64,000 bases of DNA from NCBI GenBank assembly GCA_001643675.2, contig LSRY02000061.1:310001-374000 (forward strand), in the 5' to 3' direction. Positions within the stretch are counted from its first letter, which is position 1. Each line of letters begins with the position of its first letter. The stretch is from Monocercomonoides exilis PA203 (taxonomy: Eukaryota > Protista > Preaxostyla). Below the pieces are notes generated by a model. The model saw only the letters and a program-made list of their open reading frames with translations, did no database searches and was not told where the DNA came from. Shown piece by piece: positions 983-58,600 of the stretch. The position numbers were made by a program, and so were the translations under genes.

Positions 983-1597
983 ACACATTTTAATTTTTGA
1001 TTTTTTGATTTTTTTTTTTTTTCCGAATAGATGATTAGAATAAAATAGATTGTTCTGCAATTATTTCAATTATTCAACGAAAATGAGCTATTCGACATGT
1101 TGAACAAAAAAATTGTTTGAAGAGTTGCTCGCATTTTCAGGAATTAACTCTTTTCTATGTTTCTCATATCACTAGGTTTGCAATTGATAATAACAAGTTG
1201 TCAGGGAAGATGTGGAAGAACAACAAGTTGGCTTTGGGATTACTCTGCTTTTCTCTCTGTTAAACACTGTTTATGGCTTTTGTTCAGAGTTTCAGTTGAG
1301 ATTCGCTTCATTTGTTTTGGCAAATGAAAGAGTTGATTTTAATATTTGATTCAAGACAGTGAATAATCTTTCATTTGTCTCTTTGGAAGAAAAGATGGAG
1401 AATTTCTTTGATATTGTTTGCATCAAACCCAAACTGAATTTTTCCCCAAAAAAGAAGTGTATTTTTTTTTTTTTGTTCCTCTTTTTTTCGATTCGAAACA
1501 CGAAAAACACTGAAAGAAAATGAGAATAAAAACGAAAAAATATATCTGCTGCACATTGCAAAAAAAGAACTTTCCGATGAGTTTTCAATCAATCCAA

Positions 1598-27854: not shown

Positions 27855-28185
27855 ATGAATTGTTCTCGAAATAACTCTATCCCTTAACTGAGCTTCAAAA
27901 AACCCAAAGGAAAGATCAACCAATCGGAAAAACGGTGTATCTCATCTTTGGTGTTATGCGAATCAACATATAACCATATCTTTTTCTTATTTTATTTGCT
28001 TAAATGTTAAGCAATTGTAGAAATCGATCATAGTCTCAAACTTTCGAAAACTTAAGAATATTACATGAAAAATTTCTTCGAATATTTTTAATAAGGGCTG
28101 AAAAAAAAATCTTAGAGATTAAATAAAAAAATTTTATTCTGTTAAAAAAAAAAAACCTTTTTTTAATAGATTAAAATATGACTTT

Positions 28186-34186: not shown

Positions 34187-36600
34187 GAGATGAATTGTGA
34201 AATAAAAAAAAAATTTCAAAATTATTGAGTTATTTTGAAATTACCCAATAATTTTGAAATTGTCTATGGAAATTTTGAAATTTTTGGGGAATTTTGCAAT
34301 TACTCAGGAAGACAAAAATTTTTTTCTAAAAAAAATATTACACATGAATATTAAGTTCTAAATTCGAATATTAAACTTTTTCTCTTGCACAGTAATTGCA
34401 ATTGTTTATTTCAAGATGTTACAAACAGTCATTTTTGGAATTTGTCAGAATTATCGGGTCTGTTTATGTGATAGTGTAATTATCTTCACAATCAATTGAA
34501 CATAAAAAAAGCGCACAATTGAAATTCAACATATTCATAGAAATATTATTGATTCGCAGCTATCCAGAAATCAAAATAAACAATCCTCACTTCCACCAAT
34601 AAAAAAAGAAGTGTTGTTATTGCTTTTTCATCACTAGAAATATTTCACTTAGTCCAGCTGTTTTTTTGAAAACTTCTGAGTATCATTCTGTTGATATTTC
34701 TTGAGCATTTGGCATTGTTTGATCATTTTCCATAACGAATAAGAGCCACAAAAGAAAATGGGCACAACTCGATGTGTCGTTGCTGAATGGGCACATAAAG
34801 ACAATGTGATAACAAAAGGATGGATTTATGGTGTGGAGTGAAGGAGTTGAGCTTTTGGAGGAAACAGGGTTTTGAGAGGGGGAAAGGAGCGATAAAATGT
34901 TATTTTTTGTGGAAAAGAGGTGTTTTAGGAAGGTCTAAGATGCAAAATGGATGTGTCGGAAATGGATTTGGATGGACTTTTGCGAGGTTGTTTTTGAGAT
35001 TTTTGTGAGTTGGAAGGAGTTGGAGTTGTGTTAATTATTGGAGAAAAGGAATTTGCTGTTGAGGAGGTGGGATAAGAGGGGAAAACAAGAAGGACAGAAG
35101 ATGGGTGGAGTGAATGGAATATATTTATTGGAGGGGAAGATGAGAGATGGAAAGGAAATGGAGAAGAAATGGAAAAGGAATATTTTTTTTTTTAAATGCA
35201 GAGAGAAGGAGGAGGCATATGAGGCGGAACAAAGAGAAGAGATTTTGTGGACGTATGTTTGATGAGAAAGAGAAGCGTGGTTGAAGAAAAAATGTGAGGA
35301 AGATTTTTGTGTATTTTATATTTTTTATTGAAAGGACAGTTTGGTCGCGCCTCTCATTTGCGGGACAAGGGATGGAAGCTGAGGTGGAGGAAGACAGGAA
35401 GAAGGAACGTCAGGCGCAGCACTTTGCATTGTGGGTGTGGGGAAGGATTCGCGACAGTGATGGAGCGAGGTGAGGGGCTGACCATGAGGGGGTGTTTTGC
35501 GCCAGAGACATTCAAAGAAATGGAGGTATTTATTATTTTTGATTGGGAAAAGGCGTTCCATGGAGTGAAAAAGATAGGAATTATGCAATTGTTTGTGGAA
35601 GAGATGGAGGATGTGTGGCGGAGGGGAGTTAACATTTTGGAGGAAATGGAGAGAAAAAGAAGATTTGGGCAAGGGATGGGAAGGGATTCTTGAGATGGAA
35701 TCTTCTTCTTTACCAGTTTTTCATAGAATGAAGTTTGTGAAGTAATTCGAGTGGAAGGAGAATAGAGGATATGGCTTTGACGAATTTTTTTGGAAGCCAG
35801 AAAGGAGTCGATGAAATTTACATTGAAATAAACAAGAGAGATGGATCAAAATAGTTTTGAAGATTAAAAGAAATGATATATTGAGAAGAAGAATAAGAGG
35901 AAAACGAAGAAATAATAAGATTTACAAAAAGCTTTGAATAATGTTTATATTGTTTATAGAGTTGTATAATGAGCATGCATTATTAAAATCTAACTTGATT
36001 TTCTTTTTCGGTTTTTTTGCCTTTTTTTACAAGCAATATCATTTTTTTTTCTCCAGGAAATATTCATCATTGTGCAAAACATCAATATTTGAAATGTTTT
36101 TGAGTTTTAATTTGTTCTCTTCTTTCATTTTTGATGTTTTCTGTCAATTTTTGCAACTCAGTAATTTTAAACCATTTATAATCGAAATTTTTAAATGTTT
36201 TGACTATTAGAAAACACTTATTGTTCATGGAAACATTTCAATAATCGAATTAAACGTAAAATAATATATTTTTTTCTTAACGTTCTTCACATAAATACGT
36301 AAAATTATATATTTCGCATTATTTGTTGTTAAATGTTCTGAAAATTGTACAAAACATACTTAATAATATTTATGATAAATAAACTGCAATTTGTGAATAC
36401 AACAATTTTTTAGAGAAAACCGAAGATCTTCCCACAATTTTTATTTAACTTGAAATTTGTTGGTGAAACTAAAAATAACTGCCTTATTTTCAATTTATCT
36501 GAAAAATTTCAAAATTACTTGATAATTTCAAAATATCATATATGAATTTCAAAATTTTCCAAAAATTTCACAATTACACAAAAATTGTGCAATTCATCAA
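34187..36600 (-). mobile_element. Decayed Mutator (MULE) element with long terminal inverted repeats
   Basis: Left end GAGATGAATTGTGAAAT and right end ATTGTGCAATTCATC, each with ~19-bp-period AATTTTGAAATT / AATTTCAAAATT arrays. Internal minus-strand traces FP..AQI...LHFLQNV, LHFFECLW..SW..THNA and SWIM-like CPFSNDTSSCAHFL. Confidence 0.65.
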
Positions 36601-37115
36601 TTACAAAAAAAGAAAATCACATTATCCAATAGTTTAACAAATTCTATTGAATGAGATGATCATTGAAATGAATACAATAGCTTTATGAAAAACAATTACA
36701 AACAATTCATCAACAACTTTTCTTCAAACATGCTAGATTGATGAGAAATATGTCATTGCATCGATAATCAAAAAAATGATGATGACATAATTTTCAAACA
36801 AACAAAAACTTATCAGCGAGTGAAGCAAAATAAAAGCACTTTGCCAAATTTTTCCACTTGTTTGTTTTACAAAGAAATATATGCATAAAATACTTGGCTA
36901 TAGACCAAAGAACTATTTGCCAAACAATTCCGTATTAAAATGAAAACAAATAAAAAAACAATGTTTAAATTGTAAAATAACACACCCTTGTGCTATTTTT
37001 ACTTCAGAGTTCATTTATTCATTGAAAATTCACAAATTAATGAAAATAAAAAGTTTCCACAAGCGATGTGGTGAATATCTCTTTTTTTAATATTGAGGGA
37101 TGATCTACATTTTTT

Positions 37116-40100
37116 TTGGACAGATTAACATTTTTTTTGGACAGACTGTATTTCACATTTCTTATTATGTTCTTATTGGCAGCAGCTGTTTTGCAAGATT
37201 GCATTGCAAGCTCTCAACCATGGATAGTATCTTTTCTTCGTTGGATAACGAACATTCCTTTTAGATTATTTTTCATCCCATTTATTTCATTATGTATTAC
37301 AACTTTTAATTGTTACGAGACAGGAGACGAGAGAACTCATCGTTCTTATGAAAAGTTGTGCTTGGAAGATTTGTTAAAATTTGCGGGATTTGTTATAGCA
37401 GTTGTAACACTTTCATATGTTTTGTTATCTTCATTAATAATAAATAATATGATTTTTAACCACAATCCGAAACACGGAGGATTGTGGTCATCGCCACGTG
37501 GTTTATGGCAATCAATGGACTCGCTTCTTGTGTTTGGATGTGTGTTTGCAATGAGGATGCTGTTTGGATGGACTTTCTGGCGCGGAGTTGTTACAATTGG
37601 ATCTTCTATGGTAATGATGGTGTATTTTGTATATATTCAGCCAATATACAAACTGAATGGAAATCTACTGATGGCCAGCAAATGGTGCATGTTTGGATGT
37701 TTGAGACTTTTTGATGAAATTGCAAATACAATTGAAGGAGCAACAGGCAATTGGAAAATAACTATTGTACTTCAAGCTGTTGGCTTGATAGCTGGAATTG
37801 TGGTGTGCATTGTGCTGCTACCAAATATTTGTAGAAATATCAGAGAAAGAAAGTATCTCTTTCCAGTTTTTGGTAACCAATTGTCAGATATTTGTACGAA
37901 AAACCCTTCTTTGGTACTACCTGCGTTGAAGAAGCCTGAAAGAATGGAGGCATCGCTTCGCTTTATACAACAGAAAGAATACAAATCGATGATGTATTTG
38001 ACATTTGCTGATTATGTGTATGCGCAAACACTGAAGGCGAACAAGAACAACAGCTGCTGTTCTTCCAATATGCGACATTTCTGTCCGCTTATTGCAAAAT
38101 TACACAAAAGCCGATGAGCTTATAAGAAAAGCACAGATATCGTCTCCAAAAATTTTCCTAGGATTTGTGCTGTTTTGTATGACCAAAGAGAATGGAGGAA
38201 GAACAAACAGAGACAATAGAAACAGAACAGGCGATATGAATTCGTTTGCCTTCACGAAGCTACTAGAAAAGGCAGAGAAGCACCACGAGCTGGCTGTGAA
38301 TGCGATGAAGGACTTTTTCGAGAATATAATAGCGATTTCAACTGATTTCAAGTTGATTCCTGTTCTGCTGAATTCGATTGTGAAGAACGAAGACATTGCG
38401 CGGAAGAGCTACGAAGAGCTAATTACCTCACATGGGCTTAACAAGGATATCTTAAGGAGCTATGCACGTCTTTTATTAGACATCTACAACGAGGAGGATG
38501 AGGCAGAGATGATATTGAGCAGAGCTGATCGGATCGAAGAAGAATCTGCCAACTCTGGTGAGATAATGGATCGGATGCAGGTGACAGCGGTTCACAATAC
38601 TTTGTTTGGATCTGTTGGACAAAGAAAGGCCGGTACTCGAAAAGATAGCGTAGATGAGGGTTCAAGCGATAGAGGCAATACTTGCAACGAGCATGTATCC
38701 AACTACGTTCGTTTGGTGAGACAAGAAAGCTTTGAAGTGACAGGGAGTGTCGATGAAGGCGCAGCTACAGGGAAAGCTGCAGATGAAAGATTTGAAGCAT
38801 GCCAATCTTCTTTTGAACTGCTCAGCTTTGATGGTGAACGCGAAATTCTTTCTGGAAGCGAAAGACAGCTGCAACAGACTTCATACGAATGTCGAAGAAA
38901 CCAAAGATTCAGCAAAAAGAAGAGAACAAAAAAGAAAAAGAACGGAATGAGGATTGATATGATGATAGGAGGGCGAAACATATTAGGAATTCACAAAAAT
39001 GAAATGGTGACACTGAAATTTGCAACGGTATTATTGCATATTGTTATTGTTGCTGCACTTCTGTCCGCTCTTGCTGTTGATGCGACTATGTCGGGAATGA
39101 ACCAGAAAGATTTGGAAACTCTGCGAAATGTGTGTGGCTTATCATATCATTCAGCACGTGCGGCTGCAATTGCATATGACTTCTTTGTTTACGACAAAAT
39201 GTACAACTTTTCTGACCCTGTAGCAACTGACAAATGGGGTCCGATAATTATTCCAAAAAAGGAGTTGATGAAGATGCTAAAGGGGACATCAGATGACTTG
39301 GCGCGGATGCTCGGCAATGTGCATGGATCAACTATAAACATGGAGCTGTGGGAAGCAGCAAGCATCGACACGTATTTGTTCGCATTCACCACGAAGAATG
39401 AGACTCATCCAGATGGAAGCGTCGAAGAAGTCATAGGCACAAAAACGCAGATACACCATCCGTCTTCCATGTTGGAGGTGCTTGCCTCGGTTTCGCAGAT
39501 GACGCATCATCTGTTCCTTTCGAATATTTCTTCACGTCCGCGAGATCCGGATTATCTGCCAAGCATACAACATTTGGTGTTCAATTGTCCTGTCCCGATT
39601 ATGGATGGAGCCAAAAGGGTGATTATTTAATATTTCGAGCTTATTAGCTCAGGATGCGACGAAATTATAACTGCTTTTGTTCTTATAATCACCTTGTTCC
39701 TTACTCCTCTTACAGCTGCGCAGACTGTGCTCTTCATCAGAGTTACAAGAACGGCAGTGCAGAATCGAATGAAGGCATTTCGCTATGCTGGATGTGCCAA
39801 AGAGCAAGATGAACAGAGTGATGCATCAGCTTCTGAGGGGAGATGACGCTGAATTCGATGACGAGTTGGTAGATTGTGCTGTATCGAGCGAAAATCCGCA
39901 CTTGAAGCTATGCGAAAGTCGCAGCAGCAACAAATTCGAGCACTGGAGAGATGGTAGTGCGGAGATGCCGTGTGGAGGTTCCGATGAAAGTGAAAAGAGT
40001 TCTCGTTGAAAGACAAGCAAGCGAAGCTCTGTTTGGTTGATGCATCATGCTGAAGAGAAGCTGGCAGAAAGCAACAGTTTGAATTTATTGCAGAGACAAC

Positions 40101-42460
40101 AGATGATGAAGGAATCTCCTCAGAAGAAGTTGCCGTCAATGCTCGACTCGTCCAAAATAGAGCATTCTTTAAACAGATCTTCACCTTCGATGATTTCTGG
40201 TGCTGGGCTTTCGATGGAATCACTCGGAAGCGTCTCAGTTTCATTATCGTCTTCGAAATCGCAATTGGAAGAGCAGGCTGCGTTGTTATCTGTTGATGAA
40301 GAGAACACAAAAATCGTCAGCAAATCTGTGCAAAATGTCGGAGCAAGAAATCCAGCGAGATTGCCGCATGCGGAGCAGAGTCCCGTTTTAAGGAAGCTGA
40401 AAATTGAAGTCTCTGGAGCACCAAGCGAACTTCCTTCTTCTCCCCCACAAAATGATGCTTCATTTACCGGCCTCTTGGGTTTTGAGTCAAGTGGGATGGA
40501 GGTAGCAGAATGGGAGTCAGGAATAGCGAATAATGCTGAAAATGAAGCAGAATCTGCTTTTCCCAGTGTAATGCAGAAAGGAAATGTTTCAATGGCATGG
40601 CACTCTCCGGTGATTTGCGAGAGCACTTTTTCTGAGATGTGTGCGAGCAGACCACTTTTTGCCAGCCAGGGAGTGGGAATGACGAATTATGCGAAGTCTC
40701 CGTCGCTTCAGCCTGCCCTGCTTTTGGGCAGCGTTGACAAGCCTCATTGCGGGATGGCACATGAAGGCTTATTACCTCCTCAAGAGCCGATTTTTGAAAA
40801 TGCTCCCTTCTCTGCTTTCAGCCCAGTGCCTGTGGTTTTTCCTCCTGCCTCACCGAGTGGGTATCAGCAGAAAAATCCAATGTTTAACAGTCAGAATTTT
40901 CTGTTTCCACAGATCGAAATGCATTCTCCGATTCATTCAGTGAATGATTGCCCGCTAAAAATGGAGCAAAAGTTGTCGGTTTGTTATGAAACTGTTGCTC
41001 AGATTGAGCGACTTCATCGCAAAATTTGTGGAACAAAATTCAAATTCGACGAAGAAGAAAACAGAAACTATCCCGAAAAGAACAAGCAGAGAGGATTGAT
41101 CAGAAATGCCTTAGAGGATGCAGCTTGGGAAGAAAGAATGGAGAAGGAGATAGAGAAATACGCACCGGCATACATGCATCTGCCAAGTCCGGTCACGCAC
41201 AAAATGATCATGACAAGTGTACTTTCTGTGCTGCTTGGTGTTATCACGATCGCAACGACAGTTTCTTTGGTACGCGTTTATGCTAGCAGATACAAGCCAA
41301 CTTCGGCAAACATCATCCTTTCTGGAATGCGTGCCTCAATTCTGTTTCAGATCCAATTTTTGCTGCTCACAATTATTGAGCCAATTCCGTTGCTGATAAC
41401 AGACCAATCAGTCACGTTTCCAGATTCAAGCAATCCAATTATGAACAGCTCTTCACATTGCTCGGGGTTTCCGCTGACAGCGCAAGAGATGCTGGTGCCA
41501 ATGTCGAGATATTTCGAGGCGGTGCATCTGAGCTGCCACTTCGGGACTTCGGAGTATTCGCATTCAGGAGACTTCACATACGATTCAGTTTTCACCAAGC
41601 GCATGACAACCAAGTTTAACAGAGAAGCGCTGCTGCAAATGTCATATTGCATTCTTGCTGAATCTGATGACTGTTCACAGGTGAACCCAATGCGGATTTA
41701 TGGAGAAAAAGGAAATGCCCACAGCCTTGCAACACTTTTAGCACGGACGAGGGTGAATCTGGAGAGGCTTTCAAAGATGAATGTTTCCGAAATCACAATT
41801 CTGAACCCCGAAGCTCAGTATATTTTGTCTGCATTGAGATATGATATTACAGAAGGACTGAACAAAATGACTAACATAATTTTATCTACAGGAAAGGAAG
41901 AAGTGTAGGAGTCGATAACAATCTTGAGAATTGTGACTTATGGTTTTTGTGCACTATTTATTGCTTCGTAATTTGGAAATGGATTGACATGGATACGGGA
42001 AGTGGAGTTTGTCGAAAATGTGTCTGTGAAGCTGTTTAGTATGCTTCGGATAAAAGAAGATGAAAAAGTGATTGAAATGATGCCATCAATGGTGACAGGT
42101 CATGACTCCTTCGACAAAGGAAGAGAAGCAATTCTTGATGCTGCCCAGCAGCTGCTCACTACAGTCAATCAGAACGAAGATATTGAATCAATGATGGATG
42201 CGTTCTGTCAGCTTTCATCAACGGCATTGGCAATATTCAACGAAGAGGAAAAAGAAATGGCTGTGAAGAATTATCCTGGAATTGAGAAGCACAAAAGAGA
42301 GCATTTGCTGTTGAGACAGCGGCTGATGCTGATTGGAGACCAGCTTCACTCAAAGAACTATGCGGTGAAAGCAGCCGGAAAGAGAACGCGTATTTCGCAA
42401 TTTGACTTGCACTTTACTGATGAAGATATCATGCTTGCGGAGGCAGTTTGGAGGCTGTAA
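37116..42460 (+). pseudogene. Pseudogene of a large multi-TM (TmcB/TmcC-like) protein with TPR-like segment and C-terminal hemerythrin-like domain
   Basis: Collinear ORFs 37116-38117, 38092-39630, 39785-40009, 40037-41908 and 41984-42460 are separated by frameshifts and by TAA/TGA/TAG stops after which coding-like sequence continues. TPR-like ARKSYEELI..H......LRSYARLLLDIYN; hemerythrin-like MVTGH..FD...FNEEE..M....YP....HKREH...HFTDED. Confidence 0.75.
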
Positions 42461-43179
42461 TAAAATTACATATTATTATTGGTGTAGGATGAAAGCAAGA
42501 GTCATTTGTGAAAGCTAATAGACTTTTGATTTTCGATATGTATCTTTTTTAGTAAACATTTTATTTATTTATTTAACTATCTATTTATCAATTTGTCTAT
42601 TTTTATTAAAATTTTTGTTGAAACATATTTTATCTTTTCATGTTTATTATTCATTTTTTGATTATTTATTTGAAAATGGAAGGAACGAAAATATTATTTT
42701 CACAGTTAAATAATCATAATAATCTTTCTTTTATTATCATGCATTGGTATTTTAGGTGGAATATTCTTAATTTTTTCATCAATACGGAGTCAATATTTTT
42801 GGTTGGTTGAATTTGAATGTTATTATAATAGCCAAAGTTAAATTATCTTCAGATTCCTTGTAATTTCTGTTCACCCACTTATTTTCTAAATTGAATGGAA
42901 ATACATAATTTCTTGAATAGAGTTTAAAATGTGGGTTGTTACATTGTTCAAAAATTTTGAAGATTTATTTGCAAATGTGTGCTTTGGTGAAATTCTTTTG
43001 TAACTTTATCTTTGAAAAATTTGATTATTTTTTATTTTCAAAAAATTTTTATTTGTTACAATTAACCTTCAACATGGTTTTGTTTTTTTTTTTGAAATAA
43101 AAACACTCTCATGTTTGTTGAGATTTATTGTGAAATGCATCTTATACATAGACCTAGTTTTTTTCAGCAATTGCTTCAA

Positions 43180-43312
43180 TAGATGAATTTTGAATAGATT
43201 TTTTTTATTCAAATAAACTAGGTTTATTAAAATGAACTCTTGTTTATTCGAATTGATCGTGTTTATTTGAATAAACCGAGTTCATTTAAGATAGACTGAG
43301 TTCATTTGAGTT
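43180..43312 (+). repeat. Left terminal inverted repeat of a putative non-autonomous element
   Basis: TAGATGAATTTTGAATAGATTTTTTT is the reverse complement (1 mismatch in 26) of the sequence ending at 47271. It contains internal ~19-bp-period TTTATTCAAATAAA-like units. Confidence 0.8.
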
Positions 43313-43799
43313 GCGAAAAATATTTTAATAAACAAATATTTTTTATGTTAGTATAATTGATTGCAAAAACATACATATATTATTTGTTTCATAATGATGT
43401 TGTTTTGCGAATGATTTTTGTTGTTTTCGCCAAATTCTTTCAAAGATCATAAGGATCAAAATGTTAAAAAAACTGTCAAAATTTTTTTGCACCAACAAAC
43501 GATTAAAAATATATCAACATTACATTCATTAATCGTTCAACCTTCAAACTGTATTATTCACACGTTTTTACATTTTTAAAAATTGATGAAAAGAAGAATT
43601 TCATGAATTATGAAATGAAAAGTAATTTTTGATTTGCGCAAATAAAACAAATTGGATTGCTCCAATACTGGCATAAACAACTGGCATTTATACTCAGATT
43701 GGTTAAATAATATCAAAAGAAAGGAAAAAATCAAAAGAAAATAATTGTGTCGGTTTTTATAAAAAACGGATTCAAAAACAAACATGTTTGTTATCATTG

Positions 43800-46760
43800 T
43801 TTAATTGAATAATGAACGGAGTTCAACCGTTTTTCTCTTGCTATTTGCCTGCGCTTCTCCAGCAGATATTCCTTATTGTGTTGTTTCCTTCCGATCAGGA
43901 ATATGCGAAATATCATTCTGATCGTTCCAATTTATCAAGTGCAATAGTCACATTCTGATGGTATCACATGGAAGCAGCATTGATTTGACAAACGTTACAA
44001 TGGGTAACATGGAGCTGATGGGAAAAAGCATTGAAGAAGTATTTGCGCAGGCTGAATTGCGAGACGAGTCACAAGGATTAAATGAAGGCGACAGTCAAAC
44101 AGTTGAGCTAAAATGCTGCACGCTTTTCTCGCTTTGCTAAAATGCTCCTTTTGAACCCTCTATAATCAGCTGTACTGGCTGCGAGTCTTGTAGCGTGCCT
44201 GTGCAAAACACCTCGATCTAGAGCAGTGGAAGCAGCCAAAACAAGAAAAGTGGAGGAATGATAACGAAATTGAGCAAAGAAGAATTTTTCGAGTGTAGTT
44301 TTTCGGCTGTCTCGGAGTGCTTCTGCTCGGAGACTGGAAGAGGAGGCGCAATATTCCTGGATTGTTCTTCGATCATCAGTGATGGCCTGCTTCCTTTTCT
44401 GTTGAAAAACACCACGTTCATGGAGAACAAAGCATTTGTGGGAAGAGACTTATATGAAAAATGTGCGAATGAAAAAACTCAAATTGGCAACGAGTAGTTC
44501 CAGCTCGATTTCAGAGCACCGTTTGTTCGGGAGTTTGCGATGTGGGGATGCACAGAACTCGACTATGCGGACGAGCAAGATCTGCTGCTGCTTGTGGTTG
44601 TGCATCAGAGCGAGACGATATTTGCATCTTCTTCAGCGGACAATGCCTCTGACACGCGCCAGTGTGGTGCAATGAGCGAACCGTGCATTTCGCTGAATGT
44701 TGCGCTGCCGCACATCATTCCTTCAGTTTACAGCAATTTGCTGATTGACAAAAGCGCAGAGGTGACAGGGGAAGCGAGCGCTTGCGATGTCTCGATCAAG
44801 TCGCTGGATGCGGAAGGCGCCAGGGGGAGTGTTGTGCTGAACAGCAGCATCGGAAGCAAGACGAAAAGCCTCGTTTCGTGCTCGTCGAGAGTGAAAATGG
44901 AATTTCTCACGTTTTTGTTTGGAAGCGCTTTTTCTTCTTCTCATTCAAGTTTGTTACCGCTGACTGATGTCAACTTGTGGATTGCAGACACAATCTTTGC
45001 TCAAGAAGCTTATGGCGGAGGTTCTGGAATTGAACTGAATTGCTTGATTGTTGAAATGAGCGGTGGAAGATTGACGATGTCTGACTGCACTTTTGCTGGC
45101 CTCTGTCTCAGTTTTTCATGCCTAGCAGCAAAAGGCGGACAATATTGTTCATTTGCTGATTTGAATGTTTCTGAAGTGAATTGTGGAGAGTTATTTGATT
45201 TTAGCAATTTTTACAAGCCTATCAACGCAGCAAGTCTTATTTCCAGTTGCATATTTGATCGATCGGCTCTTATCCTTCGGGACTGCAAAGACTCTCAATG
45301 GAAGAAGGTTCAACTCAAGAATGAAGAGAGCAAAGCAAGCTTGATTGTGCTTTCCTCAGACGGTTCAGGAGGCCATTCAAACGTCCAATACTATCATTCG
45401 GAATTCGATTCCATATCTGTGCTGTCTGGTTCTTTGTTTTCAAAAGAATGCCAAGATTCAGATATTGAGATGAATTTCTTTACCATTTCTAACGCGAAGC
45501 TAAGAGAAGAATGTGCAGTGAGTGTTGCATCAAATGCTTCCACATTCCATTTGAAGCAGTCTTCATTCCAAAACATAACCAGAAATTCCTTTGGTCCGTG
45601 CTGTTTGGCCGCTTCATCTTCATCTTTGTTGGTGGAATTGGAGAATTGCACCAACCAAAAATGAATTTCATCCTCAGAAAAGGGGAGAATTGCTGCTTTG
45701 ACGAATTTATCGGATGTTTGCTTATCTTCATGCGTGTTCGACGGAGCAGTAAGCGCGGCAGATTTGAGAGCGAGTGATGAGCGATCAGAAGAGCTGTGCC
45801 AATGCAGTGGATCGATGGTTGATCTTCAGAATTGCACAGGAAGTATTATTGACACGAGTGTTGCAAACTCGTCGAAAAGATGTGTTCCTGTGTTTTGTTG
45901 AAGCACCTGTGTGAAATTTGTATTATTTGTCAACAACAGCCGAGTACAACGGGTTATCCGTTCATAAGGAACAACATCGCCTGCTCTGACCATGCGCTTT
46001 TGAATATTCATTGCCTGAAAATCGGGGATGGCTTTCTTCCGAACACCTCGACGTGAATTTCTTCCAGTTGAGAACATTGGAAAAAATGGCTTCGTAAAGA
46101 GCATCCCGTTCTTTATTCCGCAGCTAAATTCAGTGATATCTTGTTAAGAAGGCAATGTCATTTCCCTGGATCTCATTGGCTCCTCGTTCATTCCCTTGCA
46201 CTAACTCCTCCAGATTGATTTTGTCAATTAATTCCTCCACAAACTCAGAAATATCCGTTGCAAGTTGAACTTAATGAAAATGAAACTGTAATCCATGTTG
46301 TCATCTCAGCCTCAATCGCAACTTCGGTGTCTGACAATACTGAAGTGGCTGCAAGAACCATGTTTAAAAGCTCAAATACATTTGCATCAACTGCACAATT
46401 TCTTTTGAAGAACAGCAGTGAAGTTTAATTAAAAACGATGAAAGAATTGCTGAAGGAAGAAGAGAAAGAATACCGTCTCGACTTTTGATTGCAATTGTTA
46501 TGACATCGATAATTCTTAAGATTCTTTTGATTGGATTTATTATGTTTATTGCTCGTTGGAAGAAGATTTCGAATGAAGCGGAAGATTCGAGACAGATAGT
46601 TGATGATACAATAAGGAAGAATCCGAAGGAATTCAAATGGTGACGATGGAGACATTACTAGAAGAGCAGTGGAGGAGAGAATAGAAAAAGAGGGAGAGAA
46701 GATAAATGAAGAGTGGCCTTCAAAAAATCTATCTATGAAAATGAAATATATCCATTCAAC
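43800..46760 (+). pseudogene. Shortened, frameshifted copy 1 of the giant receptor family (last ectodomain module, TM, juxtamembrane; no kinase part)
   Basis: SECFCSETGRGGAIFLDCS, MWGC...DLLLLVV.HQSETIFASS...CG....PC.SLNV.L.HIIPS.YS.LLI match the 2591-aa protein. TM and EEQWRR remnants lie near 46480-46690. Many stops. Confidence 0.85.
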
Positions 46761-47134
46761 GGAGAAAGTGGTAAATATGAAAACAGCTTCAACCTGTCGA
46801 TTCGACTGAGAGCTTCAAATTTATATGCTTTGTTGGCTGAAAATCACTCCACGAACATCAATAGAAACAAATTTTTGTTTTTTATATTTAATTAAACAGA
46901 GATCAAATGAAAAACAAAAAAGTTGGAATGGAATAGAATCATGACAACAAAATGATATTTGCATTCATTTCTTTCTCTATTTGTCAAATAAAATTTTCTT
47001 TAAACATATATCAAAGATTGATTAAGAATACAGAAAATCTCAGATTTTTTGAATTTTTCAATTTTTTTGTTGATAAAGTGAAAGATAAAATACAAAAGTA
47101 TTATAATAAGTGTTCACTACTTTTTCACAAAAAC

Positions 47135-47271
47135 TTTATTTAAGTGTATCGCACTTTATTCAAGTGTCACTTCAACCATTTTAAATAACATGACTTCATT
47201 AAAGAAAAACCCAGTTCATTCAAATAAGTTGAATTTATTCAAATGAAAAAAATCTATTCACAATTCATCTA
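47135..47271 (-). repeat. Right terminal inverted repeat, copy 1
   Basis: Ends AAAAAAATCTATTCACAATTCATCTA; inverted match to 43180 onward over roughly 90 bp. Confidence 0.8.
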
Positions 47272-47779
47272 ATAATTAAGATAAAAAACAAAAATTTTTA
47301 ATGTGTAAAAATTGATAACTGATAATATTCTTATATTATTTGAAAACAGTTAATGTTATTTTTGTAATGATTTTTGTTGTTTTCATCAAATATTTTTAAT
47401 GATCGAAAGGATCAAAAAATTTTTTGAAATGTTTTAATTCTTTTGCACTAACAAACGATTCAAAACGCATCATCATGACATTCGTAGTTTGCTAAACTTT
47501 CCAATTATGTAATCCACTTGTTTTAACATTTGTTAAATATTAATGAAAAGTAGAATTTTATGAATTATGAAATGATTAGCGTTTTTTCAAATTCGCAAAT
47601 AAAGAAAATTGAAATTATGTTGAATAACAAATTGGATTGCATCAATATATATGCAAACAACTGGTATTTTCACTAAGATCGGCTCAAAAGCATTAAAAGA
47701 CAGGAAAAAATAACCGGACAATAAATGAAATTGATATTTCTTTTTTGAAAAAGATAAAAAAACAAAGAAATATGTCTTC

Positions 47780-49740
47780 ATTATTTCATTGAATAATGAA
47801 CGAAGTTCAACCGCTTTTCTCTTTCTATTTGGACAAGCTTCCAACACAAGCATTCCTTATTTCACAGTTGCCCGCCTGTCTGGAACATGCGAAATGTTAT
47901 TCTTACAGTTTCAATCCATCGAATGTGGAGGCCACGTTCTAACTGCATCGCTTGGCAGAAGAATTGAGATGATAAATGTTTCGATGAGCAATATTGAACC
48001 GATACGCAAAAGCATTGTGGTAGTATTTTGCGCAGGCTGAATTGCAAGACGAGTCACTGAAATTAAATGAGGCGACAGTTCAACAGCATAACTCAAATGT
48101 TGTTCCTTCGCTCGCTTCTCCAAAACATTCCTTCCGAACCTTCCTTATCAGCAACATTGGAAGCGATCCTTGCAGCGTGTCTGTGCAAAACACGTCGATA
48201 AAGAACAGTGGAAGCAGCCAAAGCAAGAGCGGTGGAGGAATGATTATGAGTTGAAGCGAAGAAAGCTTTTTCGAGTGCCGTTTTTCTGCTGTCTCGGAGT
48301 GTTTCTACTCTGCAACTGGAAGAGGAGGCGTAATATTACTGGATTGCTCATCAATTGATAGCGATAGCACGTTGCCTTTCCTGCTGAAAAACATCACATT
48401 CTTGGAGAATAAAGCATTTGTTGAAAGAAACTTATTTGTTAAATGAGCGAACGAAAAAACTCAAATCGGCAACTAGCTCTTCAAACTCGACTTCAGACCT
48501 CCGTTTGTTCGGGATCTTGCCATGTGGGGATGCGCAGCACAGAATTATTGTGACGAGAAAGATTTATTAGAGCTGATTGTTGTGTATCAGAGCGAGACAA
48601 TATTTGCATCTTCTTCAGCAGATAACACCTCAGATTCACGCCAATGCGGAGATATCACTGCGCCCTGCTCTTCGTTGAACGTTGCGTTGTCTCACATAAT
48701 TCCTTCAGTTTACAGCAATTTGCTGATTAACAAAAGTGCCCTAGTGTCTGGAGAAGCAAGTGCACGCGATGTGACGATCAAGTCGCTGGAGCAGGAGAGC
48801 GACAATGGAGTGCTCCATCTGAACTGCTGCATCAAGAGCAAGACGGGCAGTCTTTTTGCATGTTCGTCGAGAGTGAAAATGGAGTTTCTGACAATTCTGT
48901 TTGGGAATGCTTTTTCTTCTTCTCGTTCCAGCTTAGTATCGCTTGCTGATGACAACTTGTCGATTGCAGACACAATCTTTGCTCAAGAAGCTTCTGTTGG
49001 AGGATCTGAAATTGAACTGAATTGCTCGATTGTTGAAATGAGCGGTGGAAGATTGACGATGTCTGACTGCACTTTTGCTGGCCTCCATCTCCGTTCTTCA
49101 TTCCGCAGCTGCATTCAGTGAAGTCTCACCAACAAGGCAGTAACCTTGCCATTGATCCTTCTGGCTCCTTGCTCCTGCCTTGTGGCTTGTCCCTCCAGGT
49201 TGATTCCTTCGATGGCTTAATTCACAATCTGCAGGTATTTCCGCTGCAAGCAGAAGAGTTTGCAGGCGAAACAGATATTCACACAGCCATTCCAGCATCA
49301 ATTGTTACTACTGCGTCTGAAGTTACAGAAGTGTCTGTGAAAATCTTATTTGGAAGGGTCGAATCTCCAGCTTCAACAGATTCATTCATTCTGAAAAACA
49401 GAAGCGAGGTTGAGCCAAAAGGAGATGAAAGAAATGTTGAAGGAGGAAAAGAATGAAAATCAATGTGGCCAATGATTGTGATTGCGATATTTGCATTCCT
49501 GTTTCAGATTGTTCCGATTGCTTCAATTGTTGCTCCTATTCGAAGGAGAAAGGTTTAAGAAGAAGTTAGAAAAATCAAGAAGATTGCTGATGATACAGTG
49601 ATAAAGGATACGAAGGCATTTGAGTGGTAATGATGAGACGTCACCCGAGGCTAAGTGGGGAATGGTGAAGAATAATGCTGAGAAGATAAATGAAGAGCAG
49701 TTTTGAAAAAAAACCAAATGAATATGTAATTTATTCAGTC
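47780..49740 (+). pseudogene. Shortened copy 2 of the same receptor fragment, with a further internal deletion near 49100
   Basis: Collinear similarity to 43800-45120, then a jump to GSLLLPC.LS...VSV.ILFG...SP.ST.SFILKNRSE..PKGDER.VEGGKE and TM remnants. Confidence 0.85.
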
Positions 49741-50117
49741 AATGGAGAAAGCTGCAAAGATGAAAACAGCATCAATCTGTCGACTCGACTGAGCGCTTCA
49801 GAAATATATGCTTTGTTTGTTGTAGATTACTCCACGAACATTAAAAGAAACAAACTTTTATTTTTTATATTTAATTACACAGAGATCAAAAAAAGTTAAA
49901 AAGTTGAAAATAGAACAGAATAACAAGAATAAGCTTTAAATAATTGATATTTCAAGCTCATTTTATCAAACAAAATCATCTTGAAACAAATCAGAAATTT
50001 TTGTGAAGGATAAAGAAAATCTTAATTGTTTCAAAATTTTTCAATTTTTTTGTTCATAAAGCAAAAGATAAAACACAAAAATATTTTAACATGTGTTCAC
50101 TATATTTTCATGAATTA

Positions 50118-50254
50118 TTTATTTAAGTGTATCGCACTTTATTCAAGTGTCACTTCAATCATTTAAAATAACATGACTTCATTTAAGAAAAACCCAGTTC
50201 ATTCAAATAAATTGTATTTATGCAAATTAAAAAAATCTATTCACAATTCATCTA
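50118..50254 (-). repeat. Right terminal inverted repeat, copy 2
   Basis: Near-identical direct repeat of 47135-47271, ending AAAAAAATCTATTCACAATTCATCTA. Confidence 0.8.
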
Positions 50255-50619
50255 ATGATGATCAACACAAATTAATATGAAATCAAAAATCAAAATATTT
50301 TGTTCAGAATTTAAAAAAACAAAAACTTGAAAAAAAGATTTTGTATTTGAAATAGACAAAATTTGGAAAATTGATAGTTGATATCGATTATGAATTTAAA
50401 CAACAGCAAGTCGTTTTGGATTGATTATTTGTTGTTGAACATTTTTGTTTGTAATTGAAAATTTATTTTGAAAAAAGTCCAGAATAATCCATGAGATTGA
50501 ACAATTTGCTGCACAAATATCATAAATAAAATCAACTCATTTTTTTATCAAATATCACAAAACATTAAAAATAACTTTTAAAAAATGAACCATAATAGAT
50601 GTTCTGATAACTGTAAAAT

Positions 50620-52684: not shown

Positions 52685-55600
52685 ATGCATTTGTTTGTTT
52701 TAGCATATTTAATTTTTGGAAAGACTTTTGAAGCACAAGATTTCTCTGGAATTGCCACATTGGAGAACAAAGGTATTCTTTCGAATATATATTTTTTCAA
52801 TTATTCAAATATTTTTTATCAAGGCTATTCATATGATGCACAGTTTCATCATAAGATTAATAACAATCACTTGTTTGAGCAGATAACATTCTCAGGAGTG
52901 AAAAAATTGCAATCAGGAACATCCACAGTCATTTACACATTTTTGGGATTCCACAATTCTACAGTTGGACTGAAAAATGTGGCGATTGAATATTTGTCTT
53001 CTCCTTTGATGCTTATAGCAGAATACTCAACTCTGATGATGGACTCCTGCATTTCCCACCAAAAATCAACATCTCCATTTCTTTTGCAAAGTGGGTCAAT
53101 CAGCATTGTGAATTTGACTTTGATCCCTCAAATCAGTTTTTGTTCCAGAAGTCTCGTATTTTCATCTGATGATTCAAATTCTGTCGTTTTGAGAAATTCC
53201 ATCATGGCAGATCTGGCTGTTTCCTCTTCAGAATGTTTCCTGTTGTCTGGAAAGAGCAAAAGTGAAGAGATTTCTAACTGTGCCTTCAGGAACATGTCTG
53301 AGAAATATGACAAGAACAGTGATTATCAGATATCCCATTCATGCTTGTTGAGTTCAATGGAGAACTGTCTCGTTTATTCGTGTGTGAATGCCTTTGAAGG
53401 AGGTATTTCGAGTGGGTCATATTCTTCACATGACTTCATCTGCAGAAACATATCAATAAGCTTCGGGAAAAGAGAAACGAATGCTCTTCAGAAAAAAGAG
53501 CAAATGAACACAACGGAAAGTCAAACATTTTCATTGTGCGAATGGACTGATTGCACAGCCGAACAAGGAGGCGCCCTTTATATACATAACAATGAAAATG
53601 CTATTCTAACTGTCGAAAATTCGTCGTTTACAAGATGTAGTGCTTCCTCGACAAGAGGTGGAGGAATATATGCATTGAAAGTCGCTGAATGCATTGTAAA
53701 ACATTCCACTTTTGTCCAATGTTCTGCAGCAGCTACTCCAAATATAGGGGGAGGAGGAATAATGATTGAAAATGTTTACATCCAACCAATTGTCGATAAT
53801 TGCTTCTTTCAAAGTTGCTCATCAGGTGACGATGGTGGGGCAATCGTTCTATGCCCAACAAATACTCAAAGACAAAAGCACTGCATTTCAAATTCATTTT
53901 TTGATAACTGCCGATGCAATGGATCAGCTCATGGCGCTGGAGGTGCAATTATGCATTGGGATTGCATTGATAAAGTCATGATCTCTAATTGTCTTTTGTG
54001 CGATTGCTATTCAATGCACGCAGGAGGTGCTATTGGCTTATTAATTAATAGTTACAATAGAGGAACATTGTTATTTTTCTGTTTTTTTCATGACAACATA
54101 TGCGTTAAAGGTGGACATGACATTGTTCTTTACAATTCTACTGAAAATAACATTGATCCCAGTTGTTATTCAACCAGACAGACGATGAATAGAGTTAGCA
54201 CAGACACAGCTTCAACCGTTGATCGTAGTGATTGGCTTCACAATGATTTTGGAAATGTGAGATTTGTTTCTTCAACTGATTCACAACCAAAAGGCAACGA
54301 CACATATGCTTGTGGAATAAATGAATCTCATCCATGCGGCACTATCAGCCGTTGTTTGACTCAACTTATTTCCGGATATGTGACTGAAATCGAAGTATTT
54401 TCGGGAACGATTATCGAAACAAATAGTTTTGATTGTGGATCTGACAGTTTCACTGTTTATGGCCAAAGCAATATGAGCGCAACGATCCATACAGAGTTTG
54501 AAGCATCTGGGTTATCACTTTTTTCTGTCTCGACAGGCACATTGACTATCAGTGACCTTATTTTTGTGCATGACTCGGCTCATCCGAATAACCGTGGGTC
54601 AAGGCTGTTTGAGATTTCTGGAGCAGGAGAGATGCATGTGAACAGACTGAACATATCTATTGGAAGTGGACAATCAACAGAAACAGCATTCACAACAGAG
54701 CTGATCAATGTTCAGAATGGTATGCTGCAGATGGATAATGTGAACTGGGCAAAGACGATTTCCACCGTTTCATTGTTTTCGCTTTCTTCAACAAATGAAA
54801 TTTCATTGAAGCTTTCGGAGTGTACCTTTGATGGGATTGAGAGGACAACCAGTGGAGCCGCTGTAATCTCAATCACCGATGACAAGGCAAATATTGATTT
54901 GAATTCTTGCATTTTTGAAGGATGTGGAAGCACAACATCGACTGATGGAGGATCGATGATGCTATGCGCAGGAGAAGGAAATGAAGTGAAAGTAAAAGGT
55001 GGATCTTTTGATGGGTGCTATTGCTCTGAAACAGATGGTCTTGGGGGAGGAATCCTTCTTCGATTATTGAATGAAAATCCAGATTTCCTGATCTCCTCTT
55101 CATTCGGAACAAACACAGCCAAATGGGGGAATGATATCTTCGTCATTTCACCAAATCTGGAAGAAACAGCAAAATCAGAAAACATCACATGCGTTACAGC
55201 ATCACTGGATTCCGTTGACAAAGTGAGAGGATATGATAATGGAAATGCTAGTGTTGCCATTCCTCTGTGCATCTATCTCCTTCCCACACCAGAAGAAATA
55301 CATGTGAGTTATACTGAGGCATCCAATCACTCGCATTGTGGAATTGCTAAATTCCCTTGTTTGACCTTGAAGCACTCCCTCACACGGTTGACAGGTACCA
55401 AGAAAATTATTGTGAATGGAATGATTTTGATGAGTGATGAATTGGCATTTGATGAACAGAAACATGAAATCAGAGGAAATGATGATCAAAGTGGCTGGAT
55501 CGTCTCCGATATTGAAATTGAATCTGATGCTGCGATGATAGCAACAAATGTTGAAACTGTCTTGTCAAAACTTATCTTCTCTCTTCCATCATCCCTTCCT

Positions 55601-58600
55601 CTTCACCAGACTTTCATTTCATCTTCTTCGCAGTTGACTCTGTCTCATTGTTCTATTTCTCTTCAATACCCTTCGTCTGAATTGGCATGTCTATTCTTAT
55701 CTGTTGATTCTGGTTCATTGGTTATTGATTTCTTCTCTGTTTTGTCAATCACCTTGAGCACAACTCCATTGATCTCATTTTCTGGAAGCAGTTCATATAC
55801 CGAGTCAATGAGCATCAAATGGTTGAACATGACGAACTGCACTTTCACAGAAATCGAAAGAGCAGCTGGAAGTGGAGGGTGTGTGAGCATTGGCAACAGC
55901 CACGATGATTATACAAATACACAAATAAATATTGAAGAGAGTGTTTTTGATGGATGCTCTGTGCTGGCTGATGGAAGCAGAGGAGGGGCTATCGATGTGC
56001 AGATGAAAGGAAACATTCAAATGAATATTATTTCATGCACATTCACAGGATGCACAGCACCAGCTGGAGAAGAAGAGAAGACTGGGTTTGGCGGAGGAAT
56101 GGCACTGAAGTTAATTGATGATGGTTCTTCATTTGTAATCTCATCTCCTGTTTTTGATACAGAAAAGCCAAATACTGCGAGATATGGAAATAATCTGTTT
56201 GTTGAATCATCCAACTTGACAAAGAGCATCACAAATGACACACTTCCATTTGTATCAGAGAATCTGGTTAACATTTCGTTGGATTCTATGAGAGGCTTTG
56301 ATGGAGGTGACACAACGAATGCCATTCCATTGGTGTATTTTTGGCTTACACTCGGCTCAGAGGTGTTTATTGGAGGTGATGGGAAAGATATGGGAGCCTG
56401 TGGATTCTCAGATTATCCTTGCATTTCAGTTGATTATTCACTAACGAGATTGTCAGAAGGAAATGAAAAGAATATGAACATCATTGGAAAAGCGATTCTT
56501 CAGAACTGTGTTGATCTTTGTGGAATTTCAATAAAATCAGATGATAACAATAAGTGTGTTTTGGAATGTCTCTCATCACTTGAAGGAGCAGAAGAAGCAG
56601 CAATGAAGATTTCTGGAATTACTAATTTCGAATTGATAAACTTTGTGATACCATCTTCATTCTCAGGTGGAGTCAGTTATTTGATGTTTGTTGGCTCAAG
56701 CGAAGGATTGCTGACTGTGAAGGACTGTTCATTCACTAAAATGGAAGAAAGCGGAGAAGAAATAATTAACTATGGGTTGATCGAGGCAGATGGTGGAACA
56801 GTTGTAATAAAATTTGTATCAATGCAATTACTATCTTTTTCACATGATGTTATTTCTGTGTTATCAACAACGATTTTGAACATTTATAATCTAACGATGA
56901 AAAATATTGAGCTGGATGGATCAAGCGGATTGAGCATTTCAAAGAGTTCAAGAAGAGAAAAAAATGAAGTGGAGCAAGATATTGTTATTGAGTGGAGTTT
57001 GTTCGAAGAAGTCACTCAAAACAGAACCAATGATGTTCCCATCATTCGGAATGACAATGATGAGCCTTTGAAAATGGTTATAAGAAACACAACGATGAAG
57101 AGATGTGGAGGGTTGAAGTGTGGAAAGGGAGGAGGGATGTTTTGTGTGTTGAATGAGGGAGGAAGCTTTGATTGCTCATTTTGCACGATTTCTGAGTGTT
57201 TCTGCTCAACCACAGGAAGAGGTGGCTGGCTGTTTCTGGAGTGTTCCTCAGTGGCTGAGAAGCCTCTGAGCTTTGTGCTGTCGAATCTCACCTTCAAAGA
57301 TAACTCTGCATTGAGAGGGAGAGATGTGTATGTTCGATGCCACTCAATCGAAACACAGATAGTTGATGAGCAATTCTTGCTGGATTTCAGAGCACCTTTT
57401 GTGAAGGAGCTGGCGATGTGGGGCTGTTCAACAGACTCGTTTGAGGGAGAAGAGGATCTGCTGCTGAGGGTTGTGAAATACCAGAGCGAGACGATATTTG
57501 TATCTTCAGTTTCAGATAATCACGAAGATAACAAGCGATGTGGAGAGTTCAGCACACCATGCCAATCCTTGAATGTTGGAATTCAACACATTATTCCTTC
57601 ATCTTATTCTCAACTGCTAATATCAAAGGAGACGATCATCAATGGAGAATGCGAAGCAAAGGATGTGATCGTCCGCTCACTTCAATCTTCCTCGGCCGCC
57701 CAGGTACATCTGAAATCAACAATTACAGGTGATTCGGGAAATCTTTTCACAACTTCAGAGAATATTCGATTTGAAAGATTGAAATTCAATTTTAGGAAAT
57801 CGTTTTCTTATTCAGGCAGTTTTCTCATTCATGAAGCAAGTGGCCAGCTTTCTCTTTCATTTGTTGACTTCTCTTCTGTTGGAGGGTCAAACAACAACCA
57901 ACCTGCTGTTGCTCTCAACTCATCGTTGCTGAGCATTGAAAGTGGAATTCTTCATGTTGACAACTGCTCAGTGTCACTCCTTTCATTCAAGGAGCCTTCA
58001 TTTCTGTTGAGTGGAGAGGAGATTTCGTTGACGAATGTGAAACTGGAACAGATTGAATCAACAGCAGATGTGTTTGAGATTGGCAGTTGTGGAAGTGTTG
58101 CTTTCAATGGAGTATCTGCAGATGGAGTGAAGCTGCCAGATGGTTGCATCATTTCGATTGACAGTTCATCTTCAGGAACAATTTCTGTTGGAAGCTCGTC
58201 ATTCGACAACTGCTCAAGGAATTCAGAAGGAGCTTCTGTTCTTTCATCTTCTTCAACCTCTGCTCATATCGTTCTTTCTAACTGTTCCTGTTCAATCTGT
58301 GATTCTCTGTCAAGCAAAGGAAGCATTGTGGAGATTAACAATGCAAAAGATGTTTTTATGGATTCATGTCAATTTATTGGAGTTCTTTCAAAAGAAAATG
58401 AGAATGAGAGAAATAACGCATTTGAAGAAATATGTGAATGGAATGGATCGCTAATTTATTCAGCCAATTCTTCATTGGTGATGAAATATGTGACAATAAT
58501 GAATGCTTCATCAGGTGGATTTTCTGCATCAACTTGCGACGTGACAATCGAGAAAGGAGAGTTTTTGAACAATAATCCTTTCATCGAAAAATATCCCTCC

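Follow-up and report, generated by a model that had tools for sequence, protein, structure and literature searches.

In rice and maize, Pack-MULEs are members of the Mutator superfamily and have 9-10-bp target-site duplications (TSDs) and a MURA transposase; Harbinger TSDs are usually TTA or TAA. Plant Pack-PIF and Pack-TYPE elements enclose host coding DNA within conserved ends and need an autonomous relative (Gisby & Catoni 2022, PMC8903248). In the oxymonad Monocercomonoides exilis, a gut protist, nearly half of the assembly carries a repeat annotation. Most of it is "unclassified", a label that the genome paper also gives to repeats overlapping kinases and behind which its authors suspected just the expanded kinase family (PMC8767320).

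Here we analyse a locus in M. exilis at which pieces of a giant surface-receptor gene lie between inverted repeats. An initial annotation read it as a non-autonomous Mutator derivative comparable to plant Pack-MULEs, one that shuffles receptor modules. Our results point elsewhere: the region most probably consists of two nested copies of one non-autonomous family of the PIF/Harbinger type (PHIS group), with a single captured cargo that is dead and has been patched from intact genes.

Results

The window analysed is a stretch of 64,000 nt (contig LSRY02000061.1, positions 310,001-374,000), and all coordinates refer to it. The initial annotation had paired a left repeat at 43180 with right repeats ending at 47271 and 50254, and this pairing is borne out: the 26-mer of 43180 has inverted matches at 47246-47271 and 50229-50254 with one mismatch each and no others in the window, against a chance expectation of zero (100 shuffles). 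Longer inverted arms surround these matches, 59 nt with 81% complementarity at 43180-43238/47213-47271 and 63 nt with 79% at 43176-43238/50196-50258. As had also been noted, no transposase lies within 43181-50253. Below, W1 denotes the window's 4.1-kb-type copy, L numbers other copies and C numbers other contigs.

Subfamily identity of the individual segments, with the left end belonging to the subfamily of 47274-50253, reveals a nested structure in which a 3.1-kb-type element (43181-43316 plus 47274-50253) encloses a 4.1-kb-type element that lacks its own left end. The outer left end (43181-43316, forward strand), a 25-26-nt terminal inverted repeat (TIR) followed by subterminal repeats and represented by at least 40 full-length genomic copies (87-98%), matches L031, the sister copy of 47274-50253, at 97.7% identity but L042, to which the inner body is most closely related, at only 93%. 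Near 43317 there is a change to the L042 type; here the inner element sets in at approximately position 138 of its own length, its left ~137 nt being absent, and runs on to the right terminus (43317-47270, forward strand). Full-length homology links it to at least 15 4.1-kb copies (71-82%), and over the right 172 nt its identity to L042 is 97.7%; its right TIR (47246-47270, reverse strand) is the inverted 26-mer match, and the right end as a whole (47100-47271) has at least 40 copies in the genome. Directly after the AAT at which the inner element meets the outer body (47271-47273), the latter restarts at L031 position 139 and runs through positions 139-3121 of that sister (47274-50253, forward strand, right TIR 50229-50253; 90.8% identity over 2996 nt). 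The outer element is itself flanked by an AAT duplication, at 43178-43180 on the left and 50254-50256 on the right. The three AAT triplets contradict the earlier statement that no TSD is visible, and with it the conclusion that the copies must be old. The closest sampled copies, 96% identical, likewise speak against great age, and at that identity current activity is no more than possible.

An alternative parsing, with 43181-47270 as one complete insertion beside a 5'-truncated copy, was dropped because the left end is of the subfamily of 47274-50253. The identities of the segments suggest instead that a 4.1-kb-type copy inserted at an AAT ~138 nt inside a 3.1-kb deletion-derivative copy, and that the two resulting tandem left ends would later have merged into one.

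A genome search with the TIR recovered paired, cargo-bearing copies with a TSD as anticipated, although of 3 bp and not of the expected 8-10 bp. At least 40 of 63 left-end candidates and at least 40 of 74 right-end candidates were scored as end copies, and left and right ends 4092-4127 bp apart yield at least 25 paired copies of very uniform length, which upholds the earlier description of a non-autonomous DNA transposon that is bounded by TIRs and carries part of a host receptor gene. The termini are AGATGAATTTTGAATAGA... and its inverse, the element reading AGATG...CATCT, with the first ~130-170 nt of each end conserved. Element borders are sharp across 30 aligned copies, homology holds throughout the parts outside the cargo (1-661 and 3630-4092), and copies are dispersed on more than 25 contigs. 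The family is a real cut-and-paste DNA transposon of M. exilis with at least 40 copies, perhaps 60-75. Longer family variants of 11-18 kb are found on C59, C36, C47 and C48.

The cargo had been described as the last ectodomain module, transmembrane (TM) segment and juxtamembrane region of the receptor, and this proves accurate: it is a contiguous 2.95-kb piece corresponding to aa 1434 to ~2416 of P0224, the closer receptor paralogue. Of the giant receptor kinase it includes the last ~700 ectodomain residues, the TM segment and a juxtamembrane portion of ~70 residues. In the inner element this pseudogenised fragment occupies 43841-46750 (forward strand; tblastn and blastx). The outer element holds the same fragment, broken, at 47828-49624 (forward strand; tblastn against P0224), where it covers aa 1434-1858 and 2190-2367 owing to an internal cargo deletion of ~970 bp (aa 1859-2189) that is common to the outer element and L031. 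The neighbouring giant gene at 52685-60460 encodes a signal peptide, a TM segment (aa 2146-2168) and a degenerate kinase C-lobe, and its 3' part is colinear with the interior 44183-46700 by tblastx. As cargo source it was rejected at a protein identity of only 25-39%; the true relatives of the cargo are a receptor subfamily of 2750-2800 aa on other contigs.

All 20 copies, together with 26 further left ends alignable for 530 nt, share the same interior and breakpoints, the 5' breakpoint lying at aa 1434 in most copies and within ~40 residues of it in the remainder, and the 3' end near aa 2400 in all. No different captured fragment was found in this set. Such common breakpoints argue for a single capture, and not for the many captures suggested by the analogy with Pack-MULEs. 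We propose that the family picked up this 2.95-kb receptor-kinase fragment once, early in its history, and amplified afterwards.

Repeated independent captures, in which different receptor paralogues supplied the cargos as in a true Pack system, would nevertheless explain two observations. The cargos do not form one clade (monophyly costs 150 lnL, p-AU 3.6e-5; trees from FastTree, plus a quick tree with the AU test), and the W1 ORF is nearer to intact genes (76-78% aa identity) than to any other transposon copy (70% or less). We consider this explanation improbable, since it must contend with the shared breakpoints and the homology of the non-cargo parts, and since likeness to any single gene does not extend over a whole cargo but is confined to tracts of 150-450 nt with abrupt borders. 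One such tract in W1 (44564-44924, forward strand), which we attribute to conversion from an intact receptor gene, has 99% nucleotide identity to C2:1558659 and C2:1503369, whose frames stay open for 2782 and 2780 aa, vs 89% to the best transposon copy. The left flank (44200-44560) is 83% identical to the same two genes, whereas for the right flank (44925-45120) they are missing among the 40 best matches, the lowest of which is 74%; identity of W1 to these genes therefore goes from 83% to 99% to below ~75% across ~900 nt.

Private gene-like tracts are present in W1, L032, L033, L043, L048 and L050. Of the eight such near-identical tracts found, six are common to two to five genes but occur in a single transposon copy, which points to flow from gene to transposon; the other two involve one gene each and are ambiguous in direction (P0225/L050, 98%; P0121/L048, 95%). 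The gene set comprised 19 of ~35 close receptor paralogues, as proteins; DNA-level identities came from three DNA searches only and establish donor genes and borders for a single tract. Intact paralogues repeatedly overwrite cargo tracts of a few hundred bp, as shown at the DNA level in W1 and at the protein level in five other copies. A run-length permutation test for mosaicism among copies returned 86 of 120 pairs as "significant", a result confounded by the conserved termini. Overwriting would proceed through ordinary ectopic gene conversion or through template switching during excision-gap repair, two routes that the tracts do not tell apart. The overwriting of short tracts from intact paralogues is also why the cargos look gene-like, both in their lack of monophyly and in a 3-periodic divergence, with codon-position diversity among copies of 0.246/0.220/0.327 vs a flat 0.22-0.24 in the non-coding flank.

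Could the cargo instead be a working, or recently working, gene, such as a truncated membrane-anchored decoy receptor under selection? The 3-periodic divergence and the very uniform element length are what selection might produce, the TM-containing end is kept even in transposase-bearing copies, and low-depth metatranscriptome contigs map to the cargo. Yet every cargo examined is a pseudogene (n=20), with 6-14 stops plus frameshifts in 20 of 20 copies. The inner cargo has six in-frame stops and changes frame from 2 to 1 to 3, with its longest open stretch at 44540-45664, and the outer cargo has 6 stops (tblastn); the deletion derivative is present at two loci and hence transposed after its cargo was broken. 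The metatranscriptome contigs are patchy, at a depth of 4-8 no deeper than over the flank 42900-43072, and come from runs that may contain DNA; the sole deep stretch coincides with the tract that is 99% identical to intact genes. With the periodicity explained by imported gene tracts, a functional cargo is very hard to sustain.

The duplication at the insertion site bears on the superfamily. An offset scan found a 3-bp AWT direct repeat (AAT/ATT) flanking AGATG...CATCT in 16 of 21 copies as the best fit, with the middle base agreeing in 19 of 21 and no match to a duplication of 4-9 bp at any offset. L036 is nested in the right end of another copy, and excising L036 together with one ATT leaves a gap-free right end that is 94% identical to that of W1; this seamless reconstruction of an empty site confirms the 3-bp TSD. 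L026 and L030 are flanked by (AAT)n. Reading the termini as TA|GATG...CATC|TA, with a TA duplication like that of Tc1/mariner, was ruled out by the offset scan and the empty site. The family inserts at AAT/ATT and duplicates those 3 bp, against the usual TWA of Harbinger.

Relatives with the same termini encode a transposase. L040 and L047 (5.2 kb) share with W1 a left end of 256 nt and a right end of 430 nt and contain pieces of DDE_Tnp_4, and C27:330952-336153 combines both family ends with an intact 725-aa ORF that matches DDE_Tnp_4 at 38.1 bits (Pfam cut-off 24.8), its catalytic domain split by a long proline/serine-rich insert. The nearest Atlas clusters of the transposase are DDE_Tnp_4, one of them also HTH_Tnp_4. 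A Myb-like second ORF was not found in transposase-bearing copies, in which introns, common in this organism, could hide one; L052, a locus without the last 1.4 kb of the element, has ORFs of at most 81 aa beyond its transposase. Cargo sequence is present in the 5.2-kb copies too, as its last ~245 aa with the TM-containing end, so that capture may have come before or after the loss of the transposase. Because the TSD is 3 bp and elements sharing both termini contain DDE_Tnp_4, we assign the family, on these sequence criteria, to PIF/Harbinger (PHIS group) and not to Mutator. Given the common ends, the 725-aa transposase of the 5.2-kb relatives presumably moves the non-autonomous copies in trans.

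The original Pack-MULE reading, with a Mutator derivative shuffling receptor modules, is favoured by conserved ends as long as ~130 nt, a 25/26 terminal match, host-gene cargo and the lack of a transposase inside. We give it very little credence, since it is opposed by the 3-bp TSD backed by an empty site and by same-ended elements that encode DDE_Tnp_4, with no MULE domain matched in elements with these termini; moreover, the terminal motif has no copy in 34187-43179, where the ORFs scanned gave TPR_TmcB or nothing. That the locus contains no transposon at all, only a short receptor paralogue duplicated in tandem or segmentally along with a conserved flank, as the direct repeats 43326-45129/47282-49109 and 46102-47271/49086-50254 might suggest, can be dismissed, for the units are only 72-75% identical, belong to different subfamilies and have their nearest relatives on other contigs, while the dispersed copies possess sharp ends, TSDs and an empty site.

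Discussion

The nested copies described here are Pack-PIF-like elements, new for metamonads; the initial annotation knew of no description in this group, and we likewise found no paper linking Monocercomonoides exilis with Harbinger elements in the literature searched. Part of the overlap between repeats and kinases in this genome consists of real transposons carrying kinase-receptor fragments, with consequences for repeat masking, for pseudogene calls and for the number of genes assigned to the largest gene family. With this family, the Pack-type phenomenon, documented mainly in plants, extends to a protist and to the PIF/Harbinger superfamily. Furthermore, the family offers a clean case in which ectopic conversion has preserved a gene-like character in dead copies borne by transposons. 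Dating, phylogeny and tests for selection can all be misled by patching of this kind, which here gave 3-periodic divergence and non-monophyly without any function.

The proposed role of the element in driving the receptor family's expansion and mosaicism runs against the direction of exchange, six of the eight tracts pointing from gene to transposon and two being ambiguous, and against the pseudogene state of all 20 cargos. A reverse role is unlikely but conceivable, in that the dozens of transposon-borne pseudogenes may also act as donors, a mobile archive scattered over the genome that supplies cassettes for segmental conversion into several hundred full-length receptor genes. If so, transposition would distribute and reshuffle the sequence from which surface receptors diversify.

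The family resembles the pseudogene archives behind the mosaics of trypanosome VSG genes, Anaplasma msp2 and Borrelia vlsE, with which it shares many silent, broken partial surface-protein copies bearing short tracts near-identical to full-length genes. The direction differs, however, in that the flow seen here runs from intact genes to silent copies. With autonomous PIF/Harbinger elements and their HARBI1-type nucleases, the family has in common a DDE_Tnp_4 match above the Pfam cut-off and the 3-bp TSD, but differs in that a proline/serine-rich insert splits the catalytic domain and perhaps in the Myb-like partner ORF, of which none was seen. The Pack-MULEs of rice and maize are similar in holding gene fragments between long conserved ends with no transposase inside, whereas their 9-10-bp TSD and MURA transposase were looked for and not found in the M. 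exilis family. A close counterpart is the plant Pack-PIF, likewise a non-autonomous PIF/Harbinger TIR element with a 3-bp TSD and host coding DNA in place of a transposase. In contrast to the many different low-copy captures of plants, the oxymonad family carries one fixed-breakpoint cargo in dozens of copies, inserts with an AAT/ATT instead of a TTA/TAA duplication, has transposase-bearing relatives that themselves hold part of the cargo, and shows a cargo repeatedly patched from among hundreds of paralogues.

Results

Across the 82.3-Mb assembly of the oxymonad Monocercomonoides exilis (101 contigs; the window is C60:310001-374000), the inverted repeats at the window locus prove to be the termini of a dispersed transposon. 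The inverted repeats reported in the initial annotation are confirmed, with arms of 59-63 nt at 79-81% identity, and the window has three occurrences of the terminal 26-mer where chance predicts none; equally, the interior contains no transposase and is colinear with the end of a receptor gene, as had been noted. Of 63 genomic candidates for the left 133 nt, those scored include at least 40 full-length copies (87-98% identity); of 74 candidates for the right 172 nt, those scored include at least 40 copies (86-98%). Pairing left and right ends by coordinates yields at least 25 elements whose lengths fall within 4092-4127 bp, and size variants of 3121, 3683, 4293, 4412, 4979, about 5200-5220, 6669 and more than 11 kb also occur. 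Among 30 aligned left ends the flanks are unrelated right up to the base preceding TAGATG, and similarity extends inward for at least 530 nt in about 26.

Twenty complete copies were retrieved (L031-L050). With the element read as AGATG...CATCT and every offset and length scanned in 21 copies, 16 prove to be flanked by AAT or ATT as a 3-bp direct repeat, and the sole variable base of the target-site duplication (TSD) matches on both sides in 19; a TSD, initially described as not visible, is thus present. Copy L036 is inserted within the right end of another copy, and its removal in silico together with one ATT leaves a gap-free right end 94% identical to the window's, so that its host sequence is a paralogous empty site. 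Copies L026 and L030 are located within (AAT)n microsatellites, consistent with an AAT/ATT target. At C48:235352-257690, where these two lie, several family copies stand head-to-head or in tandem inside such microsatellites, and the repeat appears to be an insertion hot spot for the element.

The window locus itself is composite. Its left end, from 43181 to about 43316, is nearest to L031 (97.7%; L042, 93%), the body from about 43317 and the right end at 47270 are nearest to L042 (97.7% over the right 172 nt), and 47274-50253 is nearest to positions 139-3121 of L031 (90.8%), with AAT at 43178-43180, 47271-47273 and 50254-50256. These segment identities and AAT positions assign both outer ends, 43181 and 50253, to a single 3.1-kb-type element flanked by an AAT TSD. 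At position ~138 of this element lies a 4.1-kb-type element that is missing its own first ~137 nt; two tandem left ends, 93% identical, likely collapsed through recombination or slippage. The nested structure accounts for the pairing of 43180 with two right ends noted earlier. In one DNA-run contig, 46920 is followed by three other letters and then by 47371; this contig probably represents a paralogous copy or a variant without the right end rather than the window locus.

The Mutator assignment made initially gives way to a different one. Two 5.2-kb copies, L040 and L047, resemble the window element only over the left 256 nt and right 430 nt and encode DDE_Tnp_4 pieces on the opposite strand. 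A genome search with their DDE_Tnp_4 ORF returned about 90 matches, and the match at C27:331859-333268 sits in a 5202-bp element having both family ends (L052), whose transposase ORF is open for 725 aa (DDE_Tnp_4, 38.1 bits against a cut-off of 24.8). Atlas neighbours of the transposase are DDE_Tnp_4 proteins, with HTH_Tnp_4 too in one cluster. No MULE domain was matched in elements sharing both ends, and the examined part of the transposase-bearing copy showed no Myb-like partner ORF. Taken together, the 3-bp TSD and DDE_Tnp_4 place the family in PIF/Harbinger (PHIS group), not Mutator. Within the intact transposase (L052:1057-3234, minus strand), a proline/serine-rich insert of ~120 aa (aa ~440-560) separates the DDE_Tnp_4 halves; this insert is an intron-like stretch left unspliced or else a disordered loop.

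The neighbouring giant gene (ORF 52685-60460; 2591 aa, with a signal peptide, a single TM at aa 2146-2168 and a partial kinase C-lobe) has at least 579 relatives, named "uncharacterized protein MONOS_..." with PF07714 in nearly all, and is only a distant relative of the cargo (25-39% aa). The nearest cargo relatives are intact 2750-2800 aa genes on other contigs, with which the open stretch 44540-45664 (374 aa) shares 76-78% aa identity. Against one member of this set, P0224 (2769 aa), the cargo forms one contiguous block from aa 1434 to ~2416. Ten copies match from aa 1434, and in these the cargo begins at element nt 665-695; the remaining copies match from aa 1442-1474. The cargo spans 2.95 kb, with non-cargo sequence of ~660 nt on its 5' side and ~460 nt on its 3' side. 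In all 20 copies the reading frame is interrupted by 6-14 stops and changes several times, and a ~970-bp deletion (aa 1859-2189) common to L031 and the window's second copy indicates that a broken derivative moved. The transposase-bearing L040 (3862-4654) and L047 (3865-4657) carry the last ~245 cargo codons (aa 2146-2391, TM included; 53-58% aa to P0224), so that either capture preceded transposase loss or the 5.2-kb elements are recombinants.

Aligned with one another, sixteen 4.1-kb copies average 93% pairwise identity in the outermost 100 nt at each end and 60-82% internally; full-length identity among copies has a median of 74%, with closest pairs at 96.1% and 95.5%. Cargo divergence is 3-periodic (0.246/0.220/0.327 by codon position), and that of non-coding 134-688 is flat (0.22-0.24). 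Three metatranscriptome runs, counted at ≥98% identity, gave patchy contigs over 43787-46895 (depth 4-8), similarly low coverage of the outside flank 42900-43072, and no contig at the termini; coverage is deep only over the gene-identical tract.

The window also holds ordinary host genes among the receptor genes, for an ICMT/PEMT-type methyltransferase and an ML-domain protein (27270-27923 and 31236-32357, both minus strand). A 420-aa ORF at 32705-33967 (plus strand) with DDE_3 (65 bits) and HTH_Tnp_Tc3_2 is a Tc1/mariner-type transposase, and thus a second DNA transposon superfamily. At 37116-42460 (plus strand), a chain of ORFs of 333, 512, 623 and 158 aa resembles one large gene, broken or intron-split; its 512-aa ORF has TmcB-type TPR repeats (52 bits), and neither a MULE domain nor a Harbinger terminal motif was found in the chain.

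Discussion

Our analysis defines a real Pack-PIF-like transposon family in an oxymonad, whose cargo is a single amplified, dead receptor fragment repeatedly patched by intact paralogues. In a protein tree of 20 cargos and 19 close genes the cargos are not united, one group of genes (P0226/28/30/31) branches from within them, and cargo monophyly is rejected by the AU test (lnL drop 150, p = 3.6e-5). Window-by-window identities reveal a patchwork in which the nearest relative of W1, the window's inner copy, changes from stretch to stretch: in P0224 coordinates, P0221 at aa 1704-1793 (100%), and near-identically the P0226 group at aa 1794-1855, transposon copy L042 at aa 1930-1973 and P0220 at aa 2015-2063, with the remaining stretches 50-75% identical to any of these. 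DNA-level identities agree. The best outside matches of 44200-44560 reach 83-84%, genes of contig C2 among them; 44564-44924 is 99% identical to two intact C2 genes and 97%, 96% and 95% to three further genes, with no transposon copy above 89%; and 44925-45120 is 92% identical to C47 genes, with C2 genes not among the best 40 matches (down to 74%).

Private gene-like tracts additionally occur in L032, L033, L043, L048 and L050. Six of eight are of a sequence type common to two to five genes but found in one transposon copy only, the other two involving a single gene (L048 with P0121, L050 with P0225); in the L032 windows, sister copy L033 is just 66-76% identical. Short-tract conversion from genes to cargos is the simplest reading. 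Repeated capture would be the alternative, yet we favour a single capture followed by patching, because breakpoints are shared and the tracts are short. Such conversion from intact genes would explain why the cargos look selected though dead.

The initial annotation had further proposed that the element could drive expansion and mosaicism of the receptor family; nothing observed shows it building or diversifying that family. P0221, P0223, P0224 and P0229, from different receptor-subfamily clades, are near-identical at aa 1704-1793 of P0224 (family mean 67-83%), which argues for short-tract conversion between intact genes too, and as the genes are mosaic among themselves, the transposon is not required for mosaicism. 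The relatives of the neighbouring giant gene, as protein tyrosine kinases, make up a family that ranks among the largest of this genome and overlaps "unclassified repeats", and the genome's DNA transposons, totalling 3.7 Mb, are listed without description (PMC8767320). Pack-type PIF elements are on record in maize and rice (PMC8903248).
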